A DNA stretch of 64,000 bases from Hyalangium minutum (GCF_000737315.1 NZ_JMCB01000024.1:1-64000); one strand, 5' to 3'; positions 29,331 to 55,611 are shown, numbered from the stretch's first letter. The notes: generated from the letters alone by a model not told the origin. A program made the numbers and translations.

Positions 29331-29403
29331 TCCCCGATAGCTCAGCCGGTAGAGCGGGTGACTGTTAATCACTAGGTCCGTGGTTCGAGTCCACGTCGGG
29401 GAG
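29331..29403 (+). tRNA. tRNA-Asn (GTT); CCA not encoded
   Basis: Cloverleaf: acceptor TCCCCGA/TCGGGGA, D-arm GCTC/GAGC, anticodon arm GGTGA-CTGTTAA-TCACT, T-arm CGTGG-TTCGAGT-CCACG. Confidence 0.97.
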
Positions 29404-29542: not shown

Positions 29543-30631
29543 GTGAGCAAGGTCTACATCAACGGTCGCTCTGTCATCCACAAGGGGGATGGCCAGATCA
29601 ACACGAGCTCGGTGCCGGACGTGTGCAAGACGCCCTCCCCGGGCGGTCCTGTACCCATTCCCTATGTGAACGTGGCGAAGGACGCGGACCTCTCCCAAGG
29701 AAGCCAGTCCGTATCCATCGAGGGACACGCGGTGGCCCTCCAAGGCTCCAGCCTGAGTACCAGCAGCGGCGACGAGCCAGGAACCGCTGGCGGCGGCCTT
29801 ATCTCCTCGAAAACAAAGGGGAAGATGACCTGGGGTAGTTCCAGCATCGACGTGAAGATCGAGGGCAAGGGGGCCATTCGCTTCTTGGACGTCACTCAGC
29901 ACAACGGCAACACCTTCAATACTACATTCATACAACAGGGGGGAACAGGGTTCGCCTATGGCGACGACCCCATCGACGCCGAATCTTCCGATTGCCCCAA
30001 GTGCAACAAGAACAAGGCCCTGCACGCCATTCTCGAAACCCTGGAGAGTGAATCCCTGACACGAGTATTGGCAGGTCAGATCGATCTGGTCCGGCTCAAG
30101 AAGAGCCACCTTCAGACGCTTCGAGGCAAAGGCAAGAGCAAGAGAGGCTATATGATCGGCATTCTCCTCTGCAAATGCCGCAAGTTCGTCTATGCCGCAA
30201 TGTCTGGGGAGGAGACCCTTCCTGGCTTCGAAGAGGCCGTCAAGCAACTTGAGACAACAGACCCTCTGAAGCGGGAGTGGGTTGTGTGTGGGCGGGTAGA
30301 TTTCACCCAGATGCACAACAGTGAAGGACTCATCCCTGACAGTGAGAGCTTCTTCAACACATTGGCTGTACCTCCGCAAGGCAACATCCCAGGAGTTTGT
30401 GCTGCACCGAAACTCCTCCAGACAGCCCAGCAGAGCAAGCACCGCCCTGCTCACATGACCGAAGTCTATTACAGTCCTGGAATCGCAAAAACTGTCGAGG
30501 TGACCTTCTTCCGGGACGGGAAACCAGTCACTGAGAATTTCGGCCATGGGGCTACGACCCCATCATGCTCCACGTGCCAGCTTCACGTCACCCCTATGCT
30601 CTGTGGGAACAACGAGGCTGTGTGCAGTTGA
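29543..30631 (+). CDS. PAAR-like (DUF4150) protein with C-terminal Cys-rich toxin domain (putative T6SS effector)
   Basis: GTG start after AAGGGGGG; DUF4150 motifs SVPDVCKTPSPGGPVPIPYVN, SSGDEPGTAGGG.IS, V.IEGK...RFLD...HN; C-terminus with CxC, CAAPKLL and PSCSTC; visibly more AT-rich codons than flanks. Confidence 0.88.
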   Translation: MSKVYINGRSVIHKGDGQINTSSVPDVCKTPSPGGPVPIPYVNVAKDADLSQGSQSVSIEGHAVALQGSSLSTSSGDEPGTAGGGLISSKTKGKMTWGSSSIDVKIEGKGAIRFLDVTQHNGNTFNTTFIQQGGTGFAYGDDPIDAESSDCPKCNKNKALHAILETLESESLTRVLAGQIDLVRLKKSHLQTLRGKGKSKRGYMIGILLCKCRKFVYAAMSGEETLPGFEEAVKQLETTDPLKREWVVCGRVDFTQMHNSEGLIPDSESFFNTLAVPPQGNIPGVCAAPKLLQTAQQSKHRPAHMTEVYYSPGIAKTVEVTFFRDGKPVTENFGHGATTPSCSTCQLHVTPMLCGNNEAVCS

Positions 30632-30644
30632 CAAGAGAGTTGCT

Positions 30645-31376
30645 GTGACCCAAGCCACCATTGACTTCCTGCGCAAGTACGACCCTGACTACCCACGCAA
30701 GGTACATGGTGCGAGTCGCCATGACATCGAGCGAGTCAAGTCCCTGAGCGGTCAATCACTACCAGCCGCCTACGAGGACTTCCTCAGCACGATGGGGAGA
30801 AGCATGGGGGATCTCAAGGTTCCCCAAACCAATTTCAGCATCGACAGGGTCATTGAGTTCTATAGCCAAGGGGCTCAACTACCTCCTCCACACTACCTCT
30901 TCATTGCCGCGCATGAGCAGGATCCTTATATCGACTACTACCTCGACTTGCGCACCTCCAATGGCTCGGACAGCGAGGTAGTCCGCATCACCAGCGAGGT
31001 GGAGGAATTCAAGAGCCAGTATGTCCATCCCCTCTTTCTGTCCTTTCAGGATTTGATATTTACATTTGCCTTCACGCTCAAGCGAATGTCTTATCTAGCA
31101 CATCGGACACAGCTTATCCCGTCACCGCCCAAAGCGCAGAAACAGGGGCTTGAGCTTGCTGATACCTTGAGCACTCTGGAGGCGCTGGCACTTCGGATGG
31201 GCTTCCAGAAACTACTCCTCACGAGTTCACGTTGCTTAATGCTTGAGCGGCAGGATGCTGCACTTTACGGGCGAGCGACTCCTCAAGGCGGCGTCCACGC
31301 CGAACTCGCCGCGAGTACGGAGAGTGAGAAAAACCGGCTCCGTGAGATCATCTGCGATCACACAGCGCTCGTGTGA
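30645..31376 (+). CDS. SMI1/KNR4 (SUKH) family immunity protein
   Basis: GAS..DIERV....G..LPAAYEDFL.TMG signature; starts 13 bp after the toxin stop; similar low-GC codon usage. Confidence 0.78.
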   Translation: MTQATIDFLRKYDPDYPRKVHGASRHDIERVKSLSGQSLPAAYEDFLSTMGRSMGDLKVPQTNFSIDRVIEFYSQGAQLPPPHYLFIAAHEQDPYIDYYLDLRTSNGSDSEVVRITSEVEEFKSQYVHPLFLSFQDLIFTFAFTLKRMSYLAHRTQLIPSPPKAQKQGLELADTLSTLEALALRMGFQKLLLTSSRCLMLERQDAALYGRATPQGGVHAELAASTESEKNRLREIICDHTALV

Positions 31377-31590: not shown

Positions 31591-32967
31591 TTACCGCTCG
31601 CCCGCCACCGGCGCTACCCGGGTGGAACCCAGCACCTGGAGCCCTGAGGGCTGCCGCCACTCCACCAGGGACACCTCCGCGCCCCCCTGCTTGTGCGGCT
31701 GACACTCCACCGCGGTGAAGCGCTGCACCAGCCGCGCGAGCCGTTGGTGCTCCGAGTCCAGCCTCGGGTTGCGCTGCAGTTCCCGGAGGAAGTCCGCCCA
31801 GACCGTGTCGGGCGCCTCGGGCGCGGGCAGCCGCATGAGCTCGATCCACGTGCCCGAGTTCACGTACAGCAGGCCTTCCTCCTGCTTCCACCGCGCCGCG
31901 TGCGTGTGGCCGATGAGCACCGCGCCCGCCCGGTACTTCTGGGCCAGCCGCTGCGCCTCCATCCACTCGCTGGGCATCGGCTCCAGGTCGAAGTACCGCT
32001 CGCTGGAGGCTCCCGCTACCACGCGGTGCATCCGCGCGTACCCCTGGAGCGCGCTGCGCCCCAGCTTCTGCCGGGCGCTCAGCAGTTCGGGCTCGTCCTC
32101 GCCGAAGTGGACCCCTCCCCCGGCCATCATCTCCTCCAGTGCCCGCTGCTCCTCCAAGGTGAGACCGGCCTCCTTCACCCGCTCGGCCAGTCCCAGATCC
32201 GGCTCGGCCTCCTCACCGAACGTCAGCGGCGCCATGTCCCGGCGCAGCAACTGCCAGCCAATGCGCAGCGATGACTCCTGGAAGGCGAGCCGCACCGCCC
32301 CCGGGTTGATTGCGAACGCCGCCAGCAGGGCCCCCTGGAAATCGGGCATGAGCAGATCCGCGAAGCGCATGCCGTACTGGCGCTTGAGCGGGTTGAGCAG
32401 CCTCTTCACCAGCAGCGAGCCCGCCGAGTAGCGGTACCCGGCGGCATCCGTTCCCTCCGGGGCACCCGGTCCCGGAAGGTGCTCGTAGTCCACCTTGTTC
32501 CAGGTGTCGTGCTGCTCGCCATGGGCCAGCAGCACCCGCGCCCCGCCCACCTCCAGCACCCACGGCGCGTCCCCGCGCTGGAAGCGCAGACGCTGGGCCA
32601 CCTCGGGTGGCTGGCCGAGCGCCTCGCGCAGCACCGCCTGCACCTCTCCGAGCGCCAGCTCTACATCATGGTTGCCCAGGCGCAGCACCACCTCGCCTCC
32701 CGCCGCCAGCACCCGCCCGAGCGCCTCGAGCACCGCCGCCGTCGGCGCCGAGGCCACCAAAGCCCGAGCCTGCGCCACCGCCCGCTCCACCTGCAGCTCG
32801 AGCGGATCCTCGTTCATGAGGAAGTCCACCGAGTCACCGTTGAGCACCACCCGCGTGGGCTCGCGGGTGAGCGTGTCCAGGAAGGCGGGCAGCGCATGGG
32901 CTCCCGCGAAGATGTCATAGCCTTGGCCATTGCCCAGATGCAGATCGCTCAACACCACCGTACGCAT
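31591..32967 (-). CDS. Calcineurin-like metallophosphoesterase
   Basis: SDLHLG, LNGD..D, GNHD, HGEQHD, IGHTH, NSGTW: a full metallophos motif set. Confidence 0.9.
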   Translation of the reverse strand: MRTVVLSDLHLGNGQGYDIFAGAHALPAFLDTLTREPTRVVLNGDSVDFLMNEDPLELQVERAVAQARALVASAPTAAVLEALGRVLAAGGEVVLRLGNHDVELALGEVQAVLREALGQPPEVAQRLRFQRGDAPWVLEVGGARVLLAHGEQHDTWNKVDYEHLPGPGAPEGTDAAGYRYSAGSLLVKRLLNPLKRQYGMRFADLLMPDFQGALLAAFAINPGAVRLAFQESSLRIGWQLLRRDMAPLTFGEEAEPDLGLAERVKEAGLTLEEQRALEEMMAGGGVHFGEDEPELLSARQKLGRSALQGYARMHRVVAGASSERYFDLEPMPSEWMEAQRLAQKYRAGAVLIGHTHAARWKQEEGLLYVNSGTWIELMRLPAPEAPDTVWADFLRELQRNPRLDSEHQRLARLVQRFTAVECQPHKQGGAEVSLVEWRQPSGLQVLGSTRVAPVAGER

Positions 32968-33018: not shown

Positions 33019-34707
33019 TCAGCCTGGTGAGCGCAGCGCGGCCAGCGCCTTCAGACCGGCCTCTGTGTAGACCTTCCGCCAGCGGCGCAGCTCCGACAGG
33101 GGAACCCCCATCCGCGAGGCAATGGCCTTCTCGCTTTCTTCACCGCTGAGCATGCCGAGCACGGCCTCGGCCATGGCCTCGGTGGGTGGCAGCGCCCCCG
33201 CGCTGGAGGCCAGGTGCTGCGCCAGAGAGACCTCCGGCGCCACGGAGAGGCTCGGGCGGACCTGCAACGCCAAGGAAGCGGAGGCCTCGGCCTGGGTGAG
33301 CGGCAGGCGCGCCGCCGGATCCCCCAGGAGGAGGTAGCCGGAGAGATCCTGCCGTAGCATCCACAGATGGGCGCGCTCGGCGGAGTCCACGGGGTTGTCG
33401 CGCCCGGCCAGGCGCGCCGACTCCTCGTAGTCATAGAGGGTGGTGAGCTCCGTGTTGGCCTCGTTGAAGAACCGCATGAGCGCACTCAGGCCCGCGCCCG
33501 CGCGGCGGCCTTCCACCAGGGTGCGCAGCAGGCCCAGAAAGCGCGAGGGCCGGTTGCGCGCCGCGCGGCCCAAGTCCTGGAAGGAGTAAGTCCACGCCAA
33601 GTCCACGTGGCCCACCACCGCCAGCGGCCCCTGAGGGTTGGCGAGCACCGCTTGAGGCAAGGCCGCGACGAAGGGACGCTCGCCTTCGCGAGGGAGCGCG
33701 GCCAGCAGCCGCTCCAGCCGGCCGGGGTACTGGCCCACCTCGCGCAGCCGCGACAGCCACGGGTAGTAGGCGCTGCGAGCGGGAGTGCCTGCCCCGAAGC
33801 ACGCGAGGAAGAACCAGATTCCCCCCGGCAGAAACGGAGTTGAAGCCAAGGTCGAGGCGTCCAGCGCCCCTTCCACGCCCAGGCTCATGGCGCCCTGGCG
33901 CGCGCGCTGCTCGTCCACCGAGCGCCAACCACTGCGCGGGGCGCCCAACCCGTGGCTCATGGTGAAGAGCACGGAGGGCTGAGGCGAGGCCACCTCCGCG
34001 AGGAGCTTCTGCGCGGACCAGTCCGCAGGCTCGCCCAGCTCGGAGAGAGACGCCGCGGAGAGGCTGCCCAGCTCCTGCAGCTTGCGCAGGCTCTCGAGGC
34101 TGGGAGCCATCAGCGCCCGGTAGCCCACGGTGGTGGCGGCGGTCCCATCGTGCGCGGTGAAGAGCATCGCGCGGCCCTGCTGCGTGGGCGAGGGCGAGCG
34201 GCTCCAGCGCAGCACCTTGTCCACATAGGCCTCGTAGCCCGCCTCCGAGGGGAAGACGAGCCGGCCCGCGAAGCCGTCACTGCCGAGCACCTGCTGCAGC
34301 TCGACCGACACCTGATCGAAATCGCCCAGCAGCAGCAAGTAGGCAGGCTGCTCCGTCTCGAACTCCGCCTCGTTGCGCAGCACGGTGTCCTTCCACCGGA
34401 CGGCCTGCATCCCATCCATGCCGGGCTTGACCCGGTAGATGCGCGCTGGGGCGCCCTGCTCCTCTTCGCGCAGCCGGCGCAGCGGCTCGATGAGGGCAAG
34501 CAGCCTGTCCCCCAAGGGGCCTTCCGGGGCAATCACCCCCCAGCGCTGATCCGGCAGGGAGTTGGGATCCACCCCCGCATCGATCAGATCCTTGCCCGAG
34601 GCGCGCTCCTCGGGCCGGGGCAGATGGGCCGCCGCATCCAAGGGCAGCGCATCTTCCAGCACGGGCCGCCGGTCATCGGCATGGGTCAGCAGCAGCTCGA
34701 AGTCCAT
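33019..34707 (-). CDS. Putative clan-CD (C25/gingipain-like) cysteine protease with C-terminal HTH
   Basis: YLLLLGD, then FTMSHGLG (His-Gly) and FFLACFGAG (Cys) as a dyad, and LLGDPA near the domain end; C-terminal IASRMGVPLSELRRWRKVY helix-turn-helix. Start set at ATG 34707. Confidence 0.62.
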   Translation of the reverse strand: MDFELLLTHADDRRPVLEDALPLDAAAHLPRPEERASGKDLIDAGVDPNSLPDQRWGVIAPEGPLGDRLLALIEPLRRLREEEQGAPARIYRVKPGMDGMQAVRWKDTVLRNEAEFETEQPAYLLLLGDFDQVSVELQQVLGSDGFAGRLVFPSEAGYEAYVDKVLRWSRSPSPTQQGRAMLFTAHDGTAATTVGYRALMAPSLESLRKLQELGSLSAASLSELGEPADWSAQKLLAEVASPQPSVLFTMSHGLGAPRSGWRSVDEQRARQGAMSLGVEGALDASTLASTPFLPGGIWFFLACFGAGTPARSAYYPWLSRLREVGQYPGRLERLLAALPREGERPFVAALPQAVLANPQGPLAVVGHVDLAWTYSFQDLGRAARNRPSRFLGLLRTLVEGRRAGAGLSALMRFFNEANTELTTLYDYEESARLAGRDNPVDSAERAHLWMLRQDLSGYLLLGDPAARLPLTQAEASASLALQVRPSLSVAPEVSLAQHLASSAGALPPTEAMAEAVLGMLSGEESEKAIASRMGVPLSELRRWRKVYTEAGLKALAALRSPG

Positions 34708-34736: not shown

Positions 34737-34775
34737 ACCCCTTTGTAGACGCACACTTGCGCGGACGAGCGCCCG

Positions 34776-34809
34776 TTGACGCGTCAGCTGACGCCCATTG
34801 ACGCGCAAA
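34776..34809. promoter_or_regulatory. Tandem palindromic enhancer boxes (putative sigma54-activator UAS)
   Basis: TTGACGCGTCAG (34776) and TTGACGCGCAAA (34798), starts 22 bp apart; the same boxes recur at 42038-42070. Confidence 0.7.
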
Positions 34810-34857
34810 TGGCCGCCAGATCCCTCCAGCAGTCACGCCCTTCCCCCGAACCTCTCT

Positions 34858-34873
34858 TGGTTCAGGGCTTGCA
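34858..34873 (+). promoter_or_regulatory. Sigma54 (-24/-12) promoter of the Kelch gene
   Basis: TGGTTCAGGGCTTGCA fits GG-N10-GC with TTGCA; 50 bp from the proximal UAS box; RBS GAGGAG and ATG 34918 downstream. Confidence 0.68.
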
Positions 34874-34917
34874 ACCTTGTGTGCGGAATCCCACTCGCAC
34901 CACGAGGAGATTCGACC

Positions 34918-37872
34918 ATGACGAAGCGGCTCGAGAGGAGCGCCCCCGCCCTGCCTCAAGGGGCGACCTGCCTGCTGCTGGGGTGCCTGGCGCTGGGCTG
35001 TGGCCCCTCGTCGAGCTCGGAGCTCCCATGGATGAAAGAGCTGCTTCAAGGAGAGTCCTCCACCGTGGAGACCTCCGGCTGGCGCGACATCGCGGCGATG
35101 GACTCCATCCGGACGAGCCACACCGCCACGCTGCTGCCCAACGGCAAGGTGTTGATCTTGGGCGGGAGCAATGCCACCGCCAAGGCTCTCGTCAGCGCGG
35201 AGTTCTATGACTTGAGTACCGGCGAGTGGGAGAAGGCAGGCACACTGGAAACCCCCCGCGCTGGACACACCGCCACGCTGCTACTCAACGGCAAGGTGCT
35301 GGTGGCGGGAGGAAGGAACGACAACGACCAGGCCCTCGACACCTTCGAGGTGTACGACCCAGCGACGAAGATCTCAACCCAGCCGACCCTTCTCATGGAC
35401 TCCGCCCGCTATGATCACACGGCGACGCTGTTGGCCTCGGGCAAGGTCCTGGTCACCGGAGGGCTTTCAGACTCCACAGGACGGTCCTCCCTCGACACGG
35501 CGGAGGTCTACGATCCGGATCAGGGCTCCTGGCAAGCAGCAGACACCATGAGCCATGCCCGCTCGCGACACACCGCCACGCGCTTGCCCTCCGACCGCGT
35601 CCTGATCGCTGGGGGAACAGACTCTGAGCTCACCAGCGACGCCGAGGAGTACGCCCCGGATGGCAGCGCGGCGATTCCCGTCGGCAAGCTGATCCAAAAT
35701 CGCTCGGAGCACACGGCCACGCTGCTGCCCTCGGGAAAGGTTCTGATCGCCGGCGGCAAGGACTTGAACGGACGCAGCATCGGCACCGCCGAGTTGTACG
35801 ATCCCAATCTGCGACAGTGGCGTCCCTGCAAGGAAATGATGCAGCAGGCCCGCATCGGCCATACGGCGGTGCTGTTGTTCACAGGCAAGGTGCTGGTCGC
35901 GGGAGGCTACGTCAGCCCCACATCGCCCACCGGTATTCCCAACACGGAGGAGTACGACCCAGACGAGGAAACCTGGAGCGACAGCGGCACCTCTCTGGGC
36001 ACCGGTCGTCTCAAGCACACGGCCACGCTGCTACCTGACGGCAGGGTGCTGGTCACGGGCGGGTTCGGAACCAGCGCCGTCCAGAGCGCGGAGGTATACG
36101 GCTCGGGGATGGGCAACTGGCGTGACGGGGAGGCCCTGCTCCAGGAGCGCTCCGGTCACACGGTGACGCAGCTTCCCGGTGGCAAGCTGCTGATCGTCGG
36201 CGGCACGTCGAACGGAACTACCGCCCTGAAAAGCGCAGAGCTCTATGACCCAGCCAGCGGCAAATGGAGCCCCACTGCCAAGCCTTTGGGGACCGCCCGC
36301 TTCCACCATACGGCCACGCTGCTTCCCAACGGCAAGGTGCTCGTCACCGGGGGCACGTCGAGCGGGACCAGCGCCCTGAAAAGCGCCGAGCTTTATGACC
36401 CGGCGACCGGCAACTGGAGCCCCACTGCCAAACTTTTGGAGACCGCCCGCTTCCACCATACGGCCACGCTGCTGCCCACGGGACAGGTGCTCGTCGCCGG
36501 AGGCACCTCAGGTCAGGACACAGCGCTGAAGGACGCAGAGCTGTACGACCCGGCAAGCAATACGTGGATCCCTGCCGAGAACCTGAGTTCCCCCAGGTTC
36601 CTCCACACGGCCACACCGCTTCCCTCGGGCGAGGTTCTGCTCATCGGAGGCACCCAGGGCCTTAACTCGCCCGTGGACAGCGACGAGCTGTATGACCCGA
36701 AGACCGGGACCTGGAGCAGCATCCCCTCATCGCGGGCCTCCCGCTTCGAGCACACCGCGACGCTGCTGCCCTCCGGACTGGTCATGGTCGCCGGAGGACG
36801 AAGTGGGGCCCACGCAGTCTCCTCCGTGGAGTTCTATGATCCGAAGGAAAGCGCGTGGGTGGAGACCGCCTCCGTCACGCTCAACACGGGCCGCTACGGC
36901 CATACGGCAACGTTGTTGCTTTCCGGCCTCGTGCTGATTGCAGGGGGGACGAATGGACTCACGGTCTTCGCCAGCTCGGAAGTGTACGACCCCGCCCTGG
37001 GGGTCTGGAGCCCTCTCACCCCGTCGCAGCTCACCGCCCGCCATCACTCGACCGCCACGCTTCTGCCCTCGGGCAAGGTGCTGGTCGCCGGAGGCGTGAA
37101 CGACAGCGGCCGCCTGAAAAGCTTCCAGATCTACGAAGGCCCCGTGGCTGCCAAGAGCGAGACGTCTCGTCCCTCGCTCCATTCCATTCCTCCCAAGCAG
37201 CCGGGAAGCACACTGGAGCTCCAAGGGACGCATCTGATCAATCACTCCGAGACCAGCGGAGGCAATGCCCGCAGCTCCTCCTCCGCCCTCCCCCTCGTCA
37301 GCTTGGTGGCCGTGGACGGAGGAGCGCTGACCCGCGTCACCCAGTGGGCCACATTCTCGGACAGCTTGCTCACCTTCACCTTGCCGAAGCTGCAAACGGG
37401 CCACTACATCCTCTCCGTCACCGCCCAGGGCGCTTCCGGAGGGCGGGTTCTCCTCGTGGACGGAACACCCCCGGCCGCGCCGCAGGTCGCTCGGCCCCTC
37501 CAGGACCAAGCCATCCACACCACGAGCCCCCCAGACATGACCGGCGCCGCCGAGCCGGGCAGCACGGTGGCACTGACTCTGGATGGAGTTAAGGCTGGGT
37601 CGATGGACATCGATGCCAAGGGGAATTGGAGCTACACTCCTCCGGCCCCCTTGGGGCTTGGAGCCCACACCCTCTCAGTCACCGCGACGGACCCGGCCGG
37701 AAATTCCAGTGAGGCCTCTTCCGTCACCTTCCACATCGAACGCCCCGTGAGCCACTATGGATGGGGTTGTGCCAGTACTCCGGGGCTTTCCCTCAGCGGG
37801 CTCTGGCTGGGGGTGACCTTATGGCTCAGGCAGAGGAGCAAGCGCCAGTCCGCCTTCCCTCTTGGCCACTGA
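34918..37872 (+). CDS. Kelch-repeat surface lipoprotein with Ig-like domain and MYXO-CTERM-like tail
   Basis: Lipobox LALGC; 14 HTATLL.xGKVL..GG Kelch repeats; Big-type domain (G.AEPGSTV.L.LDG...G.W.Y......G.HTL.VTATD.AGN); tail YGWGC, hydrophobic stretch, RQRSKR. Confidence 0.88.
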   Translation: MTKRLERSAPALPQGATCLLLGCLALGCGPSSSSELPWMKELLQGESSTVETSGWRDIAAMDSIRTSHTATLLPNGKVLILGGSNATAKALVSAEFYDLSTGEWEKAGTLETPRAGHTATLLLNGKVLVAGGRNDNDQALDTFEVYDPATKISTQPTLLMDSARYDHTATLLASGKVLVTGGLSDSTGRSSLDTAEVYDPDQGSWQAADTMSHARSRHTATRLPSDRVLIAGGTDSELTSDAEEYAPDGSAAIPVGKLIQNRSEHTATLLPSGKVLIAGGKDLNGRSIGTAELYDPNLRQWRPCKEMMQQARIGHTAVLLFTGKVLVAGGYVSPTSPTGIPNTEEYDPDEETWSDSGTSLGTGRLKHTATLLPDGRVLVTGGFGTSAVQSAEVYGSGMGNWRDGEALLQERSGHTVTQLPGGKLLIVGGTSNGTTALKSAELYDPASGKWSPTAKPLGTARFHHTATLLPNGKVLVTGGTSSGTSALKSAELYDPATGNWSPTAKLLETARFHHTATLLPTGQVLVAGGTSGQDTALKDAELYDPASNTWIPAENLSSPRFLHTATPLPSGEVLLIGGTQGLNSPVDSDELYDPKTGTWSSIPSSRASRFEHTATLLPSGLVMVAGGRSGAHAVSSVEFYDPKESAWVETASVTLNTGRYGHTATLLLSGLVLIAGGTNGLTVFASSEVYDPALGVWSPLTPSQLTARHHSTATLLPSGKVLVAGGVNDSGRLKSFQIYEGPVAAKSETSRPSLHSIPPKQPGSTLELQGTHLINHSETSGGNARSSSSALPLVSLVAVDGGALTRVTQWATFSDSLLTFTLPKLQTGHYILSVTAQGASGGRVLLVDGTPPAAPQVARPLQDQAIHTTSPPDMTGAAEPGSTVALTLDGVKAGSMDIDAKGNWSYTPPAPLGLGAHTLSVTATDPAGNSSEASSVTFHIERPVSHYGWGCASTPGLSLSGLWLGVTLWLRQRSKRQSAFPLGH
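36224..36523 (+). repeat. Recent 150-bp tandem duplication of a Kelch blade
   Basis: CCCTGAAAAGCGC at 36224 and 36374; long identical tracts such as TGGAGCCCCACTGCCAA and GACCGCCCGCTTCCACCATACGGCCACGCTGCT. Confidence 0.85.
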
Positions 37873-37950
37873 AGTGCACCGCCTCTCATGATAGTTTGGT
37901 CCGTTGCACGCGCGCGGCGTGCGCTAAGAAATTGCAGTAGCGCATGAGGA

Positions 37951-40900
37951 ATGCCGATGCGTGAGAAGTATGAGCAAGAATTGCGCGTAGCGCAGATGCG
38001 GGGTGTGCTCTCCCAAGAGGAAGCCGAGGCCCTCATCACCGAGGGCCTCCTCCAGGGCTGCCACCCCCTGGAGCTGCTCGTGGCCCGGGGCATCCTCTCC
38101 GAGGAGACCCTGGACGAGATTCGAGCCGCGGCCTACGGCACCGGAGCGCCCCTCCACGCGGGCTTGAAGCAGGGAGAGACGCTCTCCTTTCGTCGTCCCC
38201 CGGCAGAGCCCCCGGCGCGCGTGGAGGAGCCTCTCACCCCGGGCTCTCCGACTCGCACCATTCAGCCCGGGACCCCACCGGCGGTCCCACCCGCGAAGCC
38301 CCCAGTTCCCGCGGACGCGCCCGTGACCCCTGGGTCTCCCACCCTCACGGTCCACCCCACTCCCAGCCAGACGACCCCCTATCCCCAGGAGCCGGCCTTC
38401 CCCGTACCGGGCTGGGAGCGCTACCAGCCGGTGCGCTTCCTGGGGCAAGGCGGCATGGGCCGCGTCTACCTCGCGTATGACCCGGTGCTGCGCCGCAACG
38501 TGGCCCTGAAGTTCGTGCGCGGGGACGACCCCGAGCTCCAGCACCGCTTCATCTCCGAGGCGCAGGCCCAGGCCCGCGTGGAGCACGAGCGCGTGTGCAA
38601 GGTGTACGAGGTCGGCGAGGTGCAGGGCCAGCCCTTCATCGCCATGCAGTACGTGGAGGGCTGCTCGCTGCTGGATCTGATCCGGGAGCTGTCCCTGGAG
38701 CAGAAGGTGATGGTGATGCAGCAAGTGACGGAGGGCGTGCACGCCGCCCACCGCGCCGGCCTCATCCACCGGGACATCAAGCCGACCAACATCCTGGTGG
38801 AGCGTGGGGAGGACGGGCGGTGGAAGCCCTACGTCATGGACTTCGGCCTGGCGCGCGACTGGCAGCGCGAGGCCACCGTCACCGGCACGGTGCTGGGCAC
38901 CCCGCACTACATGGCGCCCGAGCAGGCCCGGGGCGAAGTGAGCCAGTTGGACCGGCGCGCGGATGTCTACAGCCTGGGCGCCACGCTGTACGTGATGCTC
39001 ACGGGCAAGACGCCCATCCCCGGCACCAACGCCTTGGAAGTGCTCACCAACCTGGCCACCCAGGAGGCGCGCCCACTGCGCGAGCACAACAAGAACGTAC
39101 CGGTGGACCTGGAGGCGATTGTCCTCAAGTGCCTGGAGCGGGAGCCGTCAGCCCGGTACGACTCAGCGCGGGCGCTGGCCGAGGACCTGGGGCGCTTCCT
39201 CAACGGCGAGCCGGTGCAGGCGCGCGCCGTGGGCACCTGGTACCGGCTGCGCAAGAAGGCGCGCAAACACTGGGCCCTGGTCTCCGTGGCCTCCGTGGCG
39301 CTGGTGCTGGTGCTCCTGGCGCTGGGAAAGGCGGAGCTCACCCGTCGTGACTCAGCTGAACGTGAGCGTCTGTCAAGCCACTTCACCAAGGTGGCGGGAG
39401 ACGTGGAAGCACGCGCCCGCTTCATCGCGCTCAGCCGCCTGCACGACACCCGCGCCGAGCGCCAGGAGCTGCGCACCCGGCTGGGAGAGATCGAGCGAGC
39501 GATGGGCGAGAGCGGCGAAGTGGCTCAAGGGCCCGGGCACTATGCGCTTGGACAGGGATGGCTGGACCTGGGGGATCCCGCCAAGGCCCGCGAGCATCTG
39601 GAGGCAGCCAAGGCGGCGGGCTATGAGGATCCGCAGGCCAACGTGGCCTTGGCCCTGGCGATGAGCCAGCTCTACAACGAGCAACTGCTGTCCCTGGGAC
39701 AGCTCGCTTCCGAGCTACGTAAAGCGCGCCGCGAAGAGCTGGCTGTCCAGTACCGGGAACCCGCGCTCAACTTGTTGCGCGAGAGCAAGAACGCCCAGGT
39801 GAACTCCAGCGAGTATATGAAAGCGCTCCTGGCCTTCTACGAGGAGCACTATGACGAGGCGCTCGGCCAGCTGAACTCGCTCGGAGAACGGATGCCCTGG
39901 TTCTACGAGGCCCCCAAGCTCCGGGGCGACATCCTCCACGTGCGCGCTCTGATGCGCTGGAGCGATGGACAGCAGACGGAGAAAGAAAAAGAACAGGTCC
40001 AAGCGGACCTCGAAGAGGCCCGCCGGTCTTACCTCCGGGCGGCGGACACCGCCCAGAGCGCACCGGAGGTGCACTGCGGGTTGGCCCGGGTCGAATGGGC
40101 GGCGGTCTCCATGGCCCTCTACAGCAACGGGGAGGTGGCGCCCCATATCGAGCGCGCGCTCCAGCACCTCTCCCGAGCCCTCCAGGCGGCGCCAGACCAC
40201 GCTGCGTCCTGGGTCCTGCAGGCCACGCTCTATCGTAACCTCGCCCAGTCCAGCCACTTGCAGGGACAAGCCGCTGAGAAGCCACTGCGCCAGGCGATCG
40301 ACTCTGCCCAGAAGGCCTTGGACCTCAACCCGTCAAACATGGAGGCGCGCAAGGAGCTGGGCATGGACTGGCTGGAGCTGGCCACGCTCCATCAAAAGAT
40401 CAACCAGGACCCTCGCGAGCCGCTCCAGCACGCTCTCAAGGTCTTCAAGGAGTTCGAGACCACCCAGAGCGACTATTACGTCTACCATGGACTGGGCCTC
40501 ATCTTCACAAAGCAGGCCGACTATGCGGAGAGTCTTGGAGCAGACTCGCTGCTCCATCGCAACGAGGCCATCAAAGCCTTCCAGAAATCGGTCGAGCTCA
40601 AAGACAACTATGAAGCGGGCTGGGTCAACCTCGCGACTCAGTATTACAAGCGAGCCACCCTCCCCAAAGCTCCCTCCCCCAAAGAAGACCTCGAGCAGGC
40701 CTGGCAGGCGCTGCAGAAGAGCCGAGAGCTGGATCGTCAGAACTTCTTGGTCCGCTTCCAAGCGGGCAGGGTCCAGTTGGCCCAGGCGCAGCGCCTGCGT
40801 GACTCAGGCGAGGATGAGCGCCCAGCCTTGACCGCGGCCCTCGACGCCTGCCGCGAGGGGCTGGCAATCAACCCTCGCATGGTGGAGTTGCACAACCTGA

Positions 40901-41643
40901 AGGGCCTGGCGCACAAGGAGCAAGCTCGGGCCGCATGGGAGCGCGGCGAGGACCCGCTGCCACTGATGGATCAGGCACAACAGGCCTTTGACCAGGCACG
41001 GACCCTCGCCCCTCAGCGGAACTGGGCCTACAACAACCTGGCGGACCTGTCCGCCACCCGGGCCATGTATCTGAGTTCCCGAGGCCAGGATGCCCGGCCC
41101 AGTGCCCGCGCAGCGCTGCAGCTCGCACGCGAGGCCCAGCAGCGCGCGCCCACGCACTACGCGCCGCTGATCGACATGGGGCATGCCTCCCAGCTGCTGG
41201 CAGCCTTCGCCTTGGAGGACGGCGCGGATCCGCGCCCGTATCTCATTGACGCCCTGGAGACCCTCCAACAGGCGCTTGAGCGCTCCCCTGACAATACGGA
41301 GACGTGGCTCTATCTGGCGGAAGCCCGAGCGGTGCAGGCGCAATGGAGCGCACGGCAAGGGCGAGGGGCTGACAAGGATTTCGAGAAGGCCCACAAGGCC
41401 TATCAGCAAGCCATCCTCTCGACGGAACGGCCCCTGGACTACCGCCTGGCCTTTGGCCGCTTCTGCCACACGTGGGCCACCTGGAGAAAACAAGCCGGGC
41501 TTGATGCCTCGGTTCCCCTCGAGCAGGGGCTGTCGCTGGTGAGCGAGGTGTTGAAGGCTCGGCCCGATTGGGCCGAGGCGCTCGCGCTGCGCGCCAGCCT
41601 CGAGGGGCTGCGTCCCCAGTCACAACCGGACGCAGCACCCTAG
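37951..41643 (+). CDS. Membrane Ser/Thr protein kinase with C-terminal TPR region
   Basis: LGQGGMGRVY, VALKF, HRDIKPTN, DFGLAR, GTPHYMAPEQ; TM WALVSVASVALVLVLLALG; long TPR-like helical C-terminus. Start may be 37957. Confidence 0.93.
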   Translation: MPMREKYEQELRVAQMRGVLSQEEAEALITEGLLQGCHPLELLVARGILSEETLDEIRAAAYGTGAPLHAGLKQGETLSFRRPPAEPPARVEEPLTPGSPTRTIQPGTPPAVPPAKPPVPADAPVTPGSPTLTVHPTPSQTTPYPQEPAFPVPGWERYQPVRFLGQGGMGRVYLAYDPVLRRNVALKFVRGDDPELQHRFISEAQAQARVEHERVCKVYEVGEVQGQPFIAMQYVEGCSLLDLIRELSLEQKVMVMQQVTEGVHAAHRAGLIHRDIKPTNILVERGEDGRWKPYVMDFGLARDWQREATVTGTVLGTPHYMAPEQARGEVSQLDRRADVYSLGATLYVMLTGKTPIPGTNALEVLTNLATQEARPLREHNKNVPVDLEAIVLKCLEREPSARYDSARALAEDLGRFLNGEPVQARAVGTWYRLRKKARKHWALVSVASVALVLVLLALGKAELTRRDSAERERLSSHFTKVAGDVEARARFIALSRLHDTRAERQELRTRLGEIERAMGESGEVAQGPGHYALGQGWLDLGDPAKAREHLEAAKAAGYEDPQANVALALAMSQLYNEQLLSLGQLASELRKARREELAVQYREPALNLLRESKNAQVNSSEYMKALLAFYEEHYDEALGQLNSLGERMPWFYEAPKLRGDILHVRALMRWSDGQQTEKEKEQVQADLEEARRSYLRAADTAQSAPEVHCGLARVEWAAVSMALYSNGEVAPHIERALQHLSRALQAAPDHAASWVLQATLYRNLAQSSHLQGQAAEKPLRQAIDSAQKALDLNPSNMEARKELGMDWLELATLHQKINQDPREPLQHALKVFKEFETTQSDYYVYHGLGLIFTKQADYAESLGADSLLHRNEAIKAFQKSVELKDNYEAGWVNLATQYYKRATLPKAPSPKEDLEQAWQALQKSRELDRQNFLVRFQAGRVQLAQAQRLRDSGEDERPALTAALDACREGLAINPRMVELHNLKGLAHKEQARAAWERGEDPLPLMDQAQQAFDQARTLAPQRNWAYNNLADLSATRAMYLSSRGQDARPSARAALQLAREAQQRAPTHYAPLIDMGHASQLLAAFALEDGADPRPYLIDALETLQQALERSPDNTETWLYLAEARAVQAQWSARQGRGADKDFEKAHKAYQQAILSTERPLDYRLAFGRFCHTWATWRKQAGLDASVPLEQGLSLVSEVLKARPDWAEALALRASLEGLRPQSQPDAAP

Positions 41644-41693
41644 CTCGCGCAAGCCCAGCTGGCCGAGGGCCTTACGCGGGACTCGCAGCACGC

Positions 41694-41900
41694 TCAGATA
41701 TCGTTTTCGATACCAGGCCGCTGGGGATCGGAGGTCTGCGAGGCCTCGCCCGTACCGCCGGTGTCGTCATCATCGAAGGGGATGGGCCACTTGCCACCGT
41801 CGCTGTGCTGGGTGCGGCTCTGAGCGTGGGTGGCGGTCTCCTGCTCGCGGTTCGCCGGCTTGTTCGCTGCGGACTTGCGCGTGGACTCTTCGCTGCTCAT
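41694..41900 (-). CDS. 68-aa acidic, low-complexity peptide of unknown function
   Basis: ATG 41900 with GAGG RBS; a consensus sigma54 promoter lies ~75 bp upstream. No homology evidence available. Confidence 0.55.
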   Translation of the reverse strand: MSSEESTRKSAANKPANREQETATHAQSRTQHSDGGKWPIPFDDDDTGGTGEASQTSDPQRPGIENDI

Positions 41901-41972
41901 GGTGTGCCTCGACTGTGAGGGGGGGGAACTGCACAGGCCCCGCTGCTGCGCGGAAGCCTTGCCTTGTCCTTG

Positions 41973-41988
41973 AGCAACCCGCGTGCCA
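41973..41988 (-). promoter_or_regulatory. Sigma54 (-24/-12) promoter of the small peptide gene
   Basis: Minus strand TGGCACGCGGGTTGCT matches the consensus TGGCACG-N4-TTGCW. Confidence 0.82.
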
Positions 41989-42037
41989 CCCACCGTCTCC
42001 GGTAGGGGCCGCTCGACCCGTCCTCAGCCGTCACGAA

Positions 42038-42082
42038 TTGACGCGTCAGCCGCGCGCGCTTGCGCGTCAATTGACGTCAGGC
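42038..42082. promoter_or_regulatory. Second set of enhancer boxes (putative UAS)
   Basis: TTGACGCGTCAGC (42038, identical to 34776-34788), TTGCGCGTCAA (42060, reverse complement of 34798-34808) and TTGACGTCAG (42071); 50 bp from the -24 element at 41988. Confidence 0.72.
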
Positions 42083-42086
42083 TTCG

Positions 42087-43664
42087 TCAATTCGAGACCA
42101 GCCCCAGTTCCCGCACACGGCGCTGGAGCGCTCGCAAGGAGACCTCGAGCCGCTGCGACATGAGCTCCAGGTCGCCGTTGCACTCACTGTAGCTCTGACG
42201 AATCTGCTCGACGCTCAGGTCCTTGGCGGTGCGCACCCGGGAGCTCTTCTTCATCAAGTTGTAGAGCGAGGCGCGGGTGATGCCGAGCTGGTTCGAGGCA
42301 GCCGCCAGGTCATAACCGTGCGCACGCAGTGCCCCCATCATCTCCTCCTCGGAGACCTCGGAGGGCTTGCGGCGCGTCTCGGGCAGTGCTTTCGAAGAGG
42401 AAGGCGACGGAGGCGTGGGGGACACCGCAGCCAAGGAAGACAGCTCCTCCTCCAGCCGAGGATCCACATGCAAGCTCGGCAGGCCGCGGCTGCCGATGAC
42501 GAGCTGACGCGTCACGTTGCGCAGCTGGCGGACATTGCCAGGCCACGGGTAGCGCACCAGCCGCGAGGCCAGCGCCGCTGGCAGCCATGGCTCGGCCGAG
42601 GGCTCCGAGGACTCCAGCCGCCAGACCTCTCCGAGGCTCTCCAACTCCTGGCGAGCAAAGTGCAAGAGCAGCAGGCCCAAGTCCTCACGGCGCTCGCGCA
42701 GAGGAGGAACCCGGATCTCGAACCCCGCCAGCCGATGAAGAAGCGGAGCCTTGAACTGCCCCTGCTGGATCTGCTCCTCCAGGTGAGCGTCTGTCGCGGC
42801 CACCAGACGCACCTGCGTCTTCACGGGCGTGCGGGCCCCCACGGGAAACATCTCCCCAGTCTCCAGCACGCGCAGGAGCAGGGCCTGCACCTCCGGAGAG
42901 GCCTCGGCCACCTCGTCCAGAAAGAGGGTGCCGCCCTGGGCCGCGCGGAAGAAGCCCTCGCGGGAGTGCGTGGCGCCCGTGTAGGCCCCACGCTCGGCGC
43001 CAAAGAGCTCGGAGGCGGCCAGCTCCTTGGGCAGGGCTCCCAGGTTCACGCTGATGAAGGGCCCCTTGTGCCGCAGGCCGTGCTGATGAAGCGCCCGGGC
43101 CACCAGCTCCTTGCCGGTGCCTGTCTCGCCCCGGATGAGCACAGGCACGTCCAGGTCCGCCACTTGCATCACCTGCCGGCGAACCCGCCTCACCGCCGCG
43201 CTCTGGCCCACCATGCCCAACTCCTCCCCCCCCTCCTTCTCCGCAGGCTCTACCCAGTGCAGCAGCAGCACCACGCGTTCGGCCAGCTCCAGCGTGACGC
43301 CAGTGACCAGCGCCTGGGTCTCCAGCTCACGCTCTCCCGTGAGCGGCTCACCCTCCACGATGACCTGGGGACTGCTTCCCGCGACGATGCGCACGCCCCC
43401 TTGCTCTCTCGGAAGGAGGCGCAGCGGCTTGCGGCTCAGGAAGGGGTCGGCCAGCGGCAGGCCGACAACGGAGCCCGGGCGCGCGAAGAGAGGCTCCGTG
43501 CGCGAGATGGCGGCCTCCCGGCCCGCCTCGAGCTCGCGCAGCAGCACCCGCTCACCGATGCGCTGGATCTTCGGGTGGGAGATGAGGGTCAACGCTGGAA
43601 CCAGTCCCGGCGCCCCGGGGCCACTGCGGCGCGGGTTCCGGGTGAGCGTGGAGATGTCTTCCAC
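42087..43664 (-). CDS. Sigma54-dependent enhancer-binding protein with FHA-like N-terminus and HTH
   Basis: GETGTGKELVA, SELFG..RGAYTGA, GGTLFLDEV, RLVAATD, WPGNVRQL; tandem C-terminal HTH-like segments; N-terminal ISR...LSR resembles a degenerate FHA; no receiver Asp pocket seen. Start set at GTG 43664 (RBS AAGGGGAGG). Confidence 0.92.
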   Translation of the reverse strand: MEDISTLTRNPRRSGPGAPGLVPALTLISHPKIQRIGERVLLRELEAGREAAISRTEPLFARPGSVVGLPLADPFLSRKPLRLLPREQGGVRIVAGSSPQVIVEGEPLTGERELETQALVTGVTLELAERVVLLLHWVEPAEKEGGEELGMVGQSAAVRRVRRQVMQVADLDVPVLIRGETGTGKELVARALHQHGLRHKGPFISVNLGALPKELAASELFGAERGAYTGATHSREGFFRAAQGGTLFLDEVAEASPEVQALLLRVLETGEMFPVGARTPVKTQVRLVAATDAHLEEQIQQGQFKAPLLHRLAGFEIRVPPLRERREDLGLLLLHFARQELESLGEVWRLESSEPSAEPWLPAALASRLVRYPWPGNVRQLRNVTRQLVIGSRGLPSLHVDPRLEEELSSLAAVSPTPPSPSSSKALPETRRKPSEVSEEEMMGALRAHGYDLAAASNQLGITRASLYNLMKKSSRVRTAKDLSVEQIRQSYSECNGDLELMSQRLEVSLRALQRRVRELGLVSN

Positions 43665-43812
43665 CAAGTGCCCTCCCCTTCGCATGCCTCCGTCGTCCGA
43701 GGCTCCTGCCCAGTACTTCAAGGGACTGAACCCTTCAAGCCCTTGCCGCTCCCCATCCTGGAACCACCTCGAGGACGTGCGCCGCTGGCGCACACGCGTC
43801 AGCGCCGTGTTC

Positions 43813-44715
43813 ATGCTGGCCTGGGCGTTGGCGTGCCTGATGGCGGGACCTGCTTGGGCGGAGGAGGCCACGAACATCGACGTGCCGGAGACGGAAAACC
43901 CATACATCCAGGCGGTAGCCACGCTCTACGGACAGTCCAAGTATGAGGAGGCGTTCTCCAAGCTGGAGAAGGCGCAGGACTGGAAGTCCAACGGGCCGCA
44001 GGAGCAACTGTGGCTCAAGCTGATGCAGGGCGTGCTGCAGGTGGAGCTCGCCCCGGAGGCGGCGCTGCAGACATTCAAGGAAGCGCTGGCGATGGATGAG
44101 CAGGCGCAGCTGCCGGTGAAGAAGGGCTCGCGGCGCTTGCGCAAGCTCTTCGAGCAGGCGCGCAACACGGCGGGGCTCCCGGCGGACCTGGCGCTGGAGG
44201 AGGAACCGGACGAGGCCGACGCGCCCGTGGTGACGGGCCCGCCCGAGCGGCGAATGGGCCTGAGCCTGAGCGTGCGCGGAGAGGTGGATGTGCCAGGACT
44301 GGGCGTCACCCGCTCTATCTCTTCCGTGGTGGGGCTTGGGTACACGAAGGAGCGGATGGGAGGATTGGTGGGAGTCCTGGTGCAGCCCACGCCAGGGCTT
44401 CGGGCCGAGTGGCAGTACCACCCCATCAACCTCGGCTGGGTGCGGCCCTATGCGGGGGTGGGGGCTACGGCGTTCTTCCTGGAGGAGAATGCGGAGGGAA
44501 CAAACACCGTCTTCGGTGGAGTCAGCGGTCGCGGGGTTCTCGGGGTGGATGTCCAGTGGAACTCTCGCATGTTTGTCTTTGCCGACGTGGCGTATGAGCG
44601 CTTCTTTACCGGGGGCGAGCGGTACCGCTCGGAGGCAGTGCTGTTCTCGATAGGCGTGGGCCTGTTCCCCCAGCATCCCAATCCGGTGGGGGCCGGGACG
44701 AACCTCCCCCGCTGA
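43813..44715 (+). CDS. Exported protein: TPR-like N-domain plus small C-terminal beta-barrel (paralog 1)
   Basis: Signal ending AWA-EE; NPYIQAVATLY...YEEA..KLEKA; C-terminal amphipathic strands (VRPYAGVG, GRGVLGVDVQW, VFADVAYE). The start may be slightly upstream. Confidence 0.72.
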   Translation: MLAWALACLMAGPAWAEEATNIDVPETENPYIQAVATLYGQSKYEEAFSKLEKAQDWKSNGPQEQLWLKLMQGVLQVELAPEAALQTFKEALAMDEQAQLPVKKGSRRLRKLFEQARNTAGLPADLALEEEPDEADAPVVTGPPERRMGLSLSVRGEVDVPGLGVTRSISSVVGLGYTKERMGGLVGVLVQPTPGLRAEWQYHPINLGWVRPYAGVGATAFFLEENAEGTNTVFGGVSGRGVLGVDVQWNSRMFVFADVAYERFFTGGERYRSEAVLFSIGVGLFPQHPNPVGAGTNLPR

Positions 44716-44866: not shown

Positions 44867-45784
44867 ATGACCTCTGCCTTGAAAATCGCCCTTCTCTGCC
44901 TGACCGCCGTCACCGCGTCCGCCGAAGAGCCCTCGAAGCTCGAGCGGCCGTTCACGCCCAACCCCTACATCCCCGCAGTGGCCACGCTCTATGAGCAAGC
45001 CCGGTACGAGGAGGCCCTCGCCAAGGTGGAGAAGGCTGTGGGCTGGAGATCCAACGAAGTGCAGGAGCTGGTCTGGCTCAAGTTGATGCGGGGCGTGCTG
45101 CTGGCGGAGCAGTCCCCGGAAGCGGCGCTGCAGTCCTTCCGCGAGGCCCTGGCGATGGATGTCTCCGTGCAGCTCCCCGTGAAAGGCCCGAGGCGCTTGC
45201 GCAGGCTCTTCGCGCAGGCCCGCGGCACCCTCGCGCTACCGGACGGTTCGCGGGAGGACGAGGAGGAACTGGAACTGGAAACACCCGCGGTGGCTCGCGA
45301 AGAAGCGGCGGACGGCTCCCCGAGGCAGCTGGGATGGAGCATGAACATTCGTGGAGAGGTGGATGTGCTGGGGCTCGGCGTCACCACGACCGTCACCCCG
45401 GTCGTGAGCATTGGGTACACCCAGGAGCGCGTGGGCGGTCTGCTCGGAGTCGTGGTGCAGTCCTCTCCGGGGCTCAGGGCCGAGGCGCGATTCCATCTCT
45501 CTACCCAGGGCGGTCTGCGCCCCTATGCGGGGCTGGGCACCACGGCCTTCTTCCATGAACTGAACGCACAGAGGACGCCCACCTTCTTCGGCGGAGTCAG
45601 CGGGAGAGGAGTGCTCGGCGTGGAGGTGCAGTGGACCTCGCGTCTGTATGGCTTTGCCGACGTTGCCTACGAGCGCTTCCTGCGGCGCAAGGAGCTGTAC
45701 CGCTCCGACTCGGTGCTGTTCTCGATAGGAGTGGGGTTGCGAGCGTGGGCTTCCCGGGCCTCCTCGAGCGTCTCGCCCAGGTAG
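44867..45784 (+). CDS. Exported TPR-like plus beta-barrel protein (paralog 2), C-terminus altered by overlap
   Basis: Colinear with paralog 1 from NPYI to FSIGVGL; the last 15 codons lie antisense to the neighbouring WD40 gene. Confidence 0.72.
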   Translation: MTSALKIALLCLTAVTASAEEPSKLERPFTPNPYIPAVATLYEQARYEEALAKVEKAVGWRSNEVQELVWLKLMRGVLLAEQSPEAALQSFREALAMDVSVQLPVKGPRRLRRLFAQARGTLALPDGSREDEEELELETPAVAREEAADGSPRQLGWSMNIRGEVDVLGLGVTTTVTPVVSIGYTQERVGGLLGVVVQSSPGLRAEARFHLSTQGGLRPYAGLGTTAFFHELNAQRTPTFFGGVSGRGVLGVEVQWTSRLYGFADVAYERFLRRKELYRSDSVLFSIGVGLRAWASRASSSVSPR

Positions 45785-50379: not shown

Positions 50380-50397
50380 AGGGTGCGCGCTCCCGGC

Positions 50398-51951: not shown

Positions 51952-51977
51952 GGGTCTCTTTCCTGGCGTCCCGGAAC

Positions 51978-55523: not shown

Positions 55524-55611
55524 GGTGCGAGTATCTTCGAGCGCTGTCCGAACTGTCCCCTTATTTTGACGGGGTTCCCGAAGGACGTCCGACCCACCGG
55601 CCAACCGCTCC

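Follow-up and report, generated by a model that had tools for sequence, protein, structure and literature searches.

A predicted sigma54 signalling cassette in Hyalangium minutum that combines an FHA-type enhancer-binding protein, tandem palindromic boxes, three promoters, and a Ser/Thr kinase

Introduction

In myxobacteria, sigma54 activators number in the dozens and Ser/Thr kinases about a hundred. Enhancer-binding proteins (EBPs) of the NtrC/NifA class, including Nla28 of Myxococcus xanthus (PMC7910581, PMC9765219), couple an AAA+ sigma54-interaction domain to a Fis-type helix-turn-helix (HTH) and act on local targets from tandem sites ~80-130 bp upstream of promoters with a GG-N10-GC signature. 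Here we describe a locus that is predicted to share all of these features, located in a 64-kb stretch of DNA from Hyalangium minutum (the whole stretch analysed, hereafter the window), in which the gene for an EBP (the activator) is accompanied by palindromic boxes, -24/-12 promoter elements, and a Hanks-type Ser/Thr kinase gene. It also departs from them: whereas EBPs of the NtrC/NifA class carry a receiver or GAF domain, the regulatory domain here is modelled as an FHA fold; the sigma54-contact loop reads GAYTGA, and a second HTH-like segment is present at the C-terminus; and the predicted site, TGACGCGTCA, is unlike CT(C/G)CG(C/G)AG, the half-site of Nla28.

FHA-domain EBPs of M. xanthus have been described (Jelsbak, Givskov and Kaiser 2005, PNAS 102:3010; MXAN4899), and the activator resembles them as a myxobacterial sigma54 activator with an FHA N-terminal domain. 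The searchable literature yielded no binding motif, local targets, or paired kinase for this EBP subfamily, and no link of TGACGCGTCA to a myxobacterial EBP. Our analysis is computational and concerns the local DNA and its relatives; on its basis we propose, with a probability of roughly 0.75, that the locus is a self-contained sigma54 signalling cassette consisting of an EBP, its tandem boxes, three promoters, and a partner kinase.

Conserved boxes and a predicted sigma54 promoter precede a small peptide gene

The activator gene (42087-43664, minus strand) encodes a 525-aa protein with an FHA-AAA+-HTH layout and is followed by a gene for a hydrophilic, acidic 68-aa peptide (41694-41900, minus strand). 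Promoters were scored out of 12 against TGGCACG-N4-TTGCW, with GG and GC exactly 10 nt apart. The candidate promoter of the peptide gene, P_pep (TGGCACGCGGGTTGCT; 41988-41973, minus strand; predicted start ~41962), scores 12/12 and is the sole match with 0 mismatches to TGGCAC-N5-TTGCW in the window. Upstream of it lie (i) a proximal box, TTGACGCGTCAGC (42038-42050, core at 42039-42048), centred at ~-81 from the predicted start; (ii) a middle box, CTTGCGCGTCAA (42059-42070), centred at ~-102 and holding the reverse complement of TTGACGCGCAA at 42060-42070; and (iii) distal elements (42072-42091), namely TGACGTCA (42072-42079) and a half-site, CGTCAAT (~42085-42091), which spans the activator stop codon (TCA at 42087-42089). 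The box centres on the peptide side (~-81, ~-102, and ~-113) are within the usual range of EBP sites, which is 80-150 bp upstream of the target promoter (PMC7910581). The distal elements contain inverted repeats and show a mean column identity of 0.73 in the nine aligned loci described below, and larger inverted repeats were found in 42030-42098. This enhancer thus holds elements, TGACGTCA and the stop-codon half-site, beyond the box pair that an earlier note on this DNA had recognised.

About a dozen activators are 80-91% identical to that of the window, where measured, and are treated here as orthologues. Ten loci were compared, namely the window, eight orthologous loci, and one recovered in a metagenome scan (L095); column identities are from nine aligned orthologous loci. 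A TGACGCGTCA-type box centred 55-58 bp from the promoter GG was found in 10/10 loci, the promoter TGGCA(C/T)-N5-TTGC is invariant in 10/10, and in each locus both fall in the interval from the activator stop codon to the peptide gene. Nine of the ten also have a second box 21 bp farther upstream. Column identity reaches 0.92-0.95 in the boxes and 0.93 in the -24/-12 element, against 0.65 at the other intergenic positions. This footprint contrast, together with the fixed spacing in all ten loci, supports the earlier proposal that the boxes would act as an enhancer of a peptide promoter.

The peptide gene has an invariant MS start and a PFD(D/E) core; its frame is open over 61-68 aa in the nine aligned loci, and a 65-aa homologue is present in L095. 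Judged by this invariant start and core and by the open frame in every locus, it is a real gene. Near the predicted 5' end of the peptide mRNA, a hairpin of the type CAGGCC(C)...(G)GGCCTG (41931-41962, minus strand) was compared across the window, L001, and L081-L088. It appears in 8/9 minimum-energy folds with weak z-scores, and RNAalifold on the peptide 5' untranslated region did not recover it. By eye, compensation-like changes in its arms are present in L082 (GGACCC/GGGTCC) and L088 (CGGGCC/GGCCCG); its loop differs in length between loci. The hairpin could be a stabilising structure or a regulatory element.

A second box pair is shared by two divergent promoters

The second module lies between the gene for a Kelch-domain protein, on the plus strand, and a divergent operon. 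Its box A, again TTGACGCGTCAGC (34776-34788, with the core TGACGCGTCA at 34777-34786), is centred at ~-102 from the predicted start of the Kelch operon and at ~-72 from the predicted divergent start. Box B, TTGACGCGCAAA (34798-34809, with TTGACGCGCAA at 34798-34808 on the plus strand), lies 22 bp away and is centred at ~-80 on the Kelch side and ~-94 on the divergent side, so that the two boxes form a direct repeat, CGCCC(G/A)TTGACGCG, with a spacing of 22. Facing away from each other across this pair are P_kelch (TGGTTCAGGGCTTGCA, a GG-N10-GC element; 34858-34873, plus strand; 9/12; predicted start ~34884) and the divergent promoter (TGGCAAGGAAATGGCA; 34736-34721, minus strand; 10/12; predicted start ~34710). 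Seen from the promoter, the two box types come in opposite orders at the Kelch and peptide sites. All strings given in the earlier note were recovered where it had placed them, and its predicted starts, 34884 on the plus strand and 41962 on the minus strand, follow correctly from the GC positions. Its spacing of exactly 50 bp between box pair and promoter is nearly right: measured from the 12-mer to TGG, the two gaps come to 48 and 49 nt, which makes them near-identical but not exactly alike.

The box pair and both flanking -24/-12 elements are kept in four loci, namely the window, L001, L081, and L082, which argues for the reading of this pair as an enhancer that would serve two promoters. 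Box A has the same sequence in L001 and is kept in L081 and L082, and TTGACGCGCAAATGG of box B is the same in the window, L001, and L081, with a diverged copy in L082. The TGG..-TTGCA of P_kelch is kept in L001, L081, and L082. The divergent element, which had been described as weaker, is present as claimed but is the most strictly conserved block of the module: 16 of the 17 bases of TGGCAAGGAAATGGCAA are invariant across the four loci. A decaying copy of the module, in which the P_kelch copy is degenerate, stands before a different gene in L083. In L081 the two promoters lie at equal distances from the box pair, and in L001 the distances agree to within 3 bp; in the window the spacer is ~10-11 bp shorter on one side, which corresponds to one helical turn. 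In all five loci with sequence in this region, the second module lies upstream of an operon that ends in the kinase gene.

As a separate observation, the predicted divergent start lies only ~3-4 nt before the ATG (34707), a spacing kept in L001, L081, and L082.

Box and promoter combinations are rare in simulated DNA

Taken singly, the short elements are not exceptional. The 8-mer TTGACGCG is unenriched in the window (5 copies versus 2.8 expected, with 14/100 shuffles reaching 5), and 4/5 of its copies fall in the two intergenic regions; sigma54-like matches scoring at least 9/12 number ~46, versus 48 expected by chance. When up to two mismatches are allowed, the 12-mer palindrome occurs six times versus 1.6 expected, a count reached by 0/100 shuffles. 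In 500 first-order Markov simulations of the window, the combination of a box pair with a sigma54-like element after it never arose, and single-box modules averaged 0.12 per 64 kb simulated versus three observed.

A fifth, near-perfect box, CTGACGCGTCAA (52041-52052), was judged to be a chance occurrence; it lies inside the 3' end of a WD40 gene (51978-55736, minus strand), no -24/-12 element was found nearby, and the box is absent from L082 and L086.

The activator combines a modelled FHA fold with AAA+ and HTH domains

The central domain of the activator matches Sigma54_activat (PF00158; E 2.7e-59, residues 151-317) and is followed by an AAA lid. Its sigma54-contact loop is GAYTGA, which is found in 71/120 family members, with GAFTGA in 22/120; F-to-Y variants of GAFTGA are reported in the PspF literature to stay active. 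A first HTH matches HTH_8 (E 7.8e-7, residues 436-473), and a second HTH-like segment (~493-520), within the C-terminal 67 residues (42087-42290, minus strand), matches HTH_8 weakly (E 0.0016). The second-HTH helix, RALQRRVRELGL, is nearly invariant among relatives with differing boxes, and the first HTH varies; with five box variants, too few for the purpose, no rule relating HTH to box could be derived.

An AlphaFold2 model built from 25 family members (mean pLDDT 83) places an FHA fold at ~residues 20-140. The 12 Foldseek matches in the PDB at E <= 0.001 are FHA domains without exception, with ArnA, OdhI, CT664, and GarA at the top, and the best of them have target-normalised TM-scores of 0.7-0.8; by this modelling, the regulatory domain is an FHA fold. 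Among 25 diverse members, Arg35, Gly37, Ser54, and Arg55 are invariant or nearly so; of the canonical phosphothreonine-binding positions (Gly-Arg, Ser-x-x-His, and Asn), the His is absent. The N-terminal tail (residues 1-17) has a pLDDT below 50 and appears disordered; within its D-x-S-T motif, Ser5 and Thr6 are invariant and Asp3 is nearly invariant in the same 25 members.

The GTG start of the activator gene and its Shine-Dalgarno sequence are conserved. We found no TGACGCGTCA box upstream of the gene that would point to autoregulation. A direct repeat, CTTGAAG-N10-CTTGAAG, followed by TACTGG, is located there (43716-43739, minus strand) and barely varies among eight orthologous loci; this is possibly the promoter of the activator gene or a site for another regulator. 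Among the homologues, an 817-aa protein from Kofleriaceae (P0005) appears to join part of an EBP to a complete FHA-EBP, which may reflect a tandem duplication or a gene-calling fusion.

A convergent Ser/Thr kinase gene accompanies the activator

The product of the plus-strand gene at 37951-41643 is a Hanks-type Ser/Thr kinase of 1230 aa, in which a transmembrane segment (~447-466) and a long stretch of TPRs were found. Its VALK, HRD, DFG, and APE motifs are intact, and on these motifs we predict a catalytically competent kinase paired with the EBP. Only 78 bp separate it from the Kelch gene, and it is probably part of the same sigma54 operon. A convergent Pkinase-TPR gene of ~1100-1280 aa is present in 8/8 orthologous loci long enough to include it, as well as in all four of the ~60%-identical relatives described below; in an Acidobacteriota relative, the kinase gene is co-directional with the EBP gene. 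Ser/Thr kinases have reportedly been proposed to control the FHA-domain EBPs of M. xanthus.

Box variants match within loci in more distant relatives

The activator also has many ~60%-identical relatives, several per genome in Archangium, Hyalangium, and Myxococcus, which are probably paralogues. Four of these loci keep the core of the arrangement, namely the EBP, usually a small open reading frame, and the convergent TPR kinase, and dyad boxes with a -24/-12 element again follow the stop codon. The boxes begin at or overlap the activator stop codon in all orthologues and in 3/4 of these relatives. Their sequences differ from locus to locus: TGACATGTCA in Pyxidicoccus (L089), TGACACGTCA / TGACGTGTC in A. 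gephyra (L091), and GACGCGTC in M. stipitatus (L092). H. gracile (L090) has three boxes with a 21-bp period before TGGCACGCTCGCTGCT. In A. gephyra, another sigma54 promoter is again preceded by the locus's variant, TGAC(A/G)(C/T)GTCA, and A. gephyra and H. gracile, two of the four relatives, have their locus's own box variant at both local targets. Because the variant matches within the locus, the adjacent activator, and not a global factor, would be the protein that reads the boxes; this is the best available argument, drawn from sequence comparison, for assigning the boxes to it.

Distant full-length relatives in Acidobacteriota and Nannocystaceae (L002-L004 and L046) lack both TGACGCGTCA boxes and a small gene downstream, and in L002 the kinase gene follows the EBP gene directly. 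We thus found the box-and-peptide layout in the Myxococcaceae/Archangiaceae relatives examined and nowhere else.

Metagenome contigs were scanned with the pattern TGACGCGTCA-N40-65-TGGCAYG-N4-TTGC, which returned 60 stretches, including just one orthologous locus (L095) and one with a 53%-identical EBP and kinase (L112). Groups with a fixed spacing were found before flgB and fliL (confirmed by Pfam). The palindrome is therefore a common EBP-type site, a result that favours the enhancer reading and removes the claim that the motif is unique to this locus.

Two further groups emerged from the scan. In L112, L118, L124, L129, L146, and L123, adjacent boxes, TGACGCGTCA-C-TGACGTGTCA, precede a sigma54 promoter and a gene for a ~254-aa protein, which starts with ITITLDEKGNAKI and could not be confidently assigned to a family; the 53%-identical EBP and the kinase of L112 lie 3-5 kb away. 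In L105, L107, L109, L122, L132, and L134, a conserved group from a lineage of ~56% GC, TGACGCGTCA lies exactly 57 bp upstream of TGGCACGAACTTTGC, with no consistent downstream open reading frame; the product of this promoter may be a small RNA under sigma54 control.

Predicted target genes and their neighbourhood

The gene behind P_kelch (34918-37872, plus strand) encodes a 984-aa protein with a Kelch beta-propeller, bacterial Ig domains, and a lipoprotein-type signal. The slot between promoter and kinase gene turns over fast: it holds this Kelch/Ig lipoprotein in the window, Big_13 fragments in L081 (15880-16355), a 242-aa protein in L083 (15630-16358), and a protein of >1980 aa in L086 (15827-21584), and it is empty in L082.

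Behind the divergent promoter lies a gene (33019-34707, minus strand) for a cytoplasmic 562-aa C25 (gingipain/caspase-fold)-like peptidase with a C-terminal HTH. The protein's own Peptidase_C25 match is weak; it has SHG...ACFGAG dyad-like motifs, and many of its homologues carry PF01364 together with PF13518. The next gene (31591-32967, minus strand), encoding a 458-aa calcineurin-like metallophosphoesterase, is probably co-transcribed with it, and the same gene pair is present in L081 and L082. Sequence searches of the PDB were uninformative for both the 562-aa C25-like protein and the 458-aa phosphoesterase, and neither PADLOC nor NCBIfam gave a specific family for these two proteins, for the EBP, or for the peptide.

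About 2 kb beyond the metallophosphoesterase gene is a tRNA gene (29331-29403, plus strand; Rfam, 68 bits). The adjacent stretch (~29.3-31.6 kb) has no open reading frame with a high GC content at third codon positions (GC3) and includes a SUKH-1/SMI1_KNR4 gene (30546-31376); this tRNA gene and stretch may mark an island boundary. On the other side, a gene for a ~312-aa protein (43777-44715, plus strand), with a signal peptide, a beta-barrel-like C-terminal half, and no family match, is divergent from the activator gene in all orthologous loci. Next to the cassette lies an island (45667-55736, minus strand) encoding a 1252-aa WD40 protein, a 517-aa TIR_2-AAA_35 protein, and a 1570-aa CHAT-like-nSTAND1-WD40 protein, and genes with like domain combinations flank the cassette in L082, L083, L085, and L086. 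No boxes or sigma54 promoters were seen before this TIR/CHAT/STAND island. The position of the predicted targets beside it may point to a part in responses to conflict or at the cell envelope.

Discussion

Comparative genomics and phylogenetic footprinting support the interpretation of these elements as sigma54 enhancers and promoters. The term regulon, used in the earlier note, can be applied to the local genes, which are what the analysed DNA covers. The palindrome is not a private motif. In the model that we infer, for EBP binding, sigma54 dependence, transcription starts, operon structure, and phospho-control alike, the EBP would bind the boxes (~-81 and ~-102) as dimers, assemble an active AAA+ ring, and remodel sigma54-RNA polymerase at three promoters. 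P_pep would yield the acidic 68-aa peptide encoded directly downstream of the activator gene; P_kelch would drive the variable secreted protein or lipoprotein gene and then, by read-through, the kinase gene, which would amount to positive feedback; and the divergent promoter, served by the same box pair, would express the C25-like peptidase and the metallophosphoesterase. The membrane-bound TPR kinase may sense an extracytoplasmic cue and create a phosphothreonine, which the FHA domain of the EBP would read, maybe on the EBP's own N-terminal Ser-Thr motif, as in GarA/OdhI.

Several points weigh against this model. At the level of the promoters, P_kelch has a weak -24 half (TGGTTC, 9/12), the GC is lost in its L083 copy, and transcripts from the divergent promoter would, unusually, have almost no leader. 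At the level of the activator, Pfam gave no match for the first 150 residues even at E <= 10, so that the FHA domain is undetected by sequence, and its phosphothreonine-binding capacity is putative. In the two ~60% relatives that have a second module, the module points away from the kinase, and kinase feedback is accordingly not a rule of the family. The same palindrome precedes the flgB and fliL sigma54 promoters in unrelated lineages, and relatives within one genome share the invariant recognition helix of the second HTH, so that they could cross-bind one another's boxes. Finally, the box counts cover only the local 64-kb DNA.

The last of these observations but one bears on the strongest rival, in which the boxes are enhancers and the promoters sigma54-dependent, but another regulator binds (another EBP, such as a ~60% relative, or a dyad-binding factor), and the adjacency of the activator is incidental. 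The use of the palindrome before flgB and fliL in lineages without this EBP family implies that other EBPs can use such a box, and several related EBPs per genome offer candidates. We nevertheless regard this rival as improbable: the boxes sit at or over the stop codon of the activator with great regularity; EBP, boxes, and targets co-occur in 10 loci despite the turnover of neighbouring genes; and the recurrence of a locus-specific variant at both targets of two relatives ties the boxes to the adjacent activator.

Far less credible is a reading of the palindromes as terminator or attenuator hairpins of the activator gene, as sigma70 -35 elements, or as RNA structures. Their location directly after the stop codon, the resemblance of TTGAC to a -35 hexamer, and the inverted repeats in 42030-42098 would suit it. 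However, a site scan found neither a terminator-like site (a G+C-rich stem of at least 5 bp followed by a T-run) nor a sigma70-like promoter (TTGACA-N16-18-TATAAT) overlapping 34770-34810 or 42030-42095; no T-run follows the boxes, which match no Rfam family, and the 10-bp palindrome could form a stem of at most 3 bp. Moreover, the same boxes are present in the divergent promoter region, where they follow no gene, and the 21-bp phasing and fixed distance to the -24/-12 element are typical of activator sites. The remaining possibility, that boxes and promoters coincide by chance in GC-rich DNA and are kept by the close kinship of the compared genomes, has in its favour the insignificant 8-mer count and the expected number of sigma54-like matches. 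It is effectively refuted, and its probability negligible, in view of the 0/500 simulations, the footprint of 0.93 versus 0.65 within the same alignments, and the layout kept in relatives of ~60% identity where flanking DNA is unalignable.

Building on the cassette model, we tentatively suggest a broader idea, which we hold to be possible but doubtful. The locus might be a modular device, present in several copies per genome, that replaces the histidine kinase/receiver pair by a eukaryote-like route, wherein (i) the kinase would phosphorylate the N-terminal Ser-Thr of the EBP, (ii) capture by the FHA domain would gate assembly of the AAA+ ring, (iii) an own variant of TGAC-N2-GTCA at each activator's own stop codon would insulate dozens of kinase-to-sigma54 pathways from one another, and (iv) a small product, the PFD(D/E) peptide, would feed back on the kinase or the FHA domain. 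The locus provides, as testable predictions, a DNA site in the form of a 10-bp palindrome at fixed phasing, three promoters with their starts, and a conserved partner kinase that may be under positive feedback. As the layout recurs with slightly different boxes, the same logic could assign targets to orphan regulators, and the recurring layout could serve the study of how parallel pathways avoid cross-talk.

Comparison with known systems places the locus among familiar designs. Divergent sigma54 promoters that share one activator region are known from Escherichia coli, at zraP/zraSR with ZraR and at hyc/hyp with FhlA. These are like the second module in having activator sites between back-to-back promoters and one operon that encodes a signalling part, but they employ a histidine kinase or a small-molecule-binding EBP where the present locus has a Hanks-type Ser/Thr kinase. 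GarA and OdhI, the top structural matches (PDB 4qcj and 6i2q), likewise have an FHA domain after a disordered Ser/Thr tail and a linkage to kinases; they are stand-alone metabolic regulators, whereas the FHA domain here is fused to an AAA+ activator and phosphorylation of its tail is hypothetical, by analogy with them. The flagellar flgB/fliL promoters have the same 10-bp palindrome 61-65 bp upstream of TGGCA(C/T)G-N4-TTGC, but they belong to other lineages (GC 0.57-0.64), with other targets and spacing, and no EBP of this family was detected on their contigs. The locus of H. minutum is, in these terms, a standard sigma54 activator/enhancer/promoter system, of which this example is newly described.

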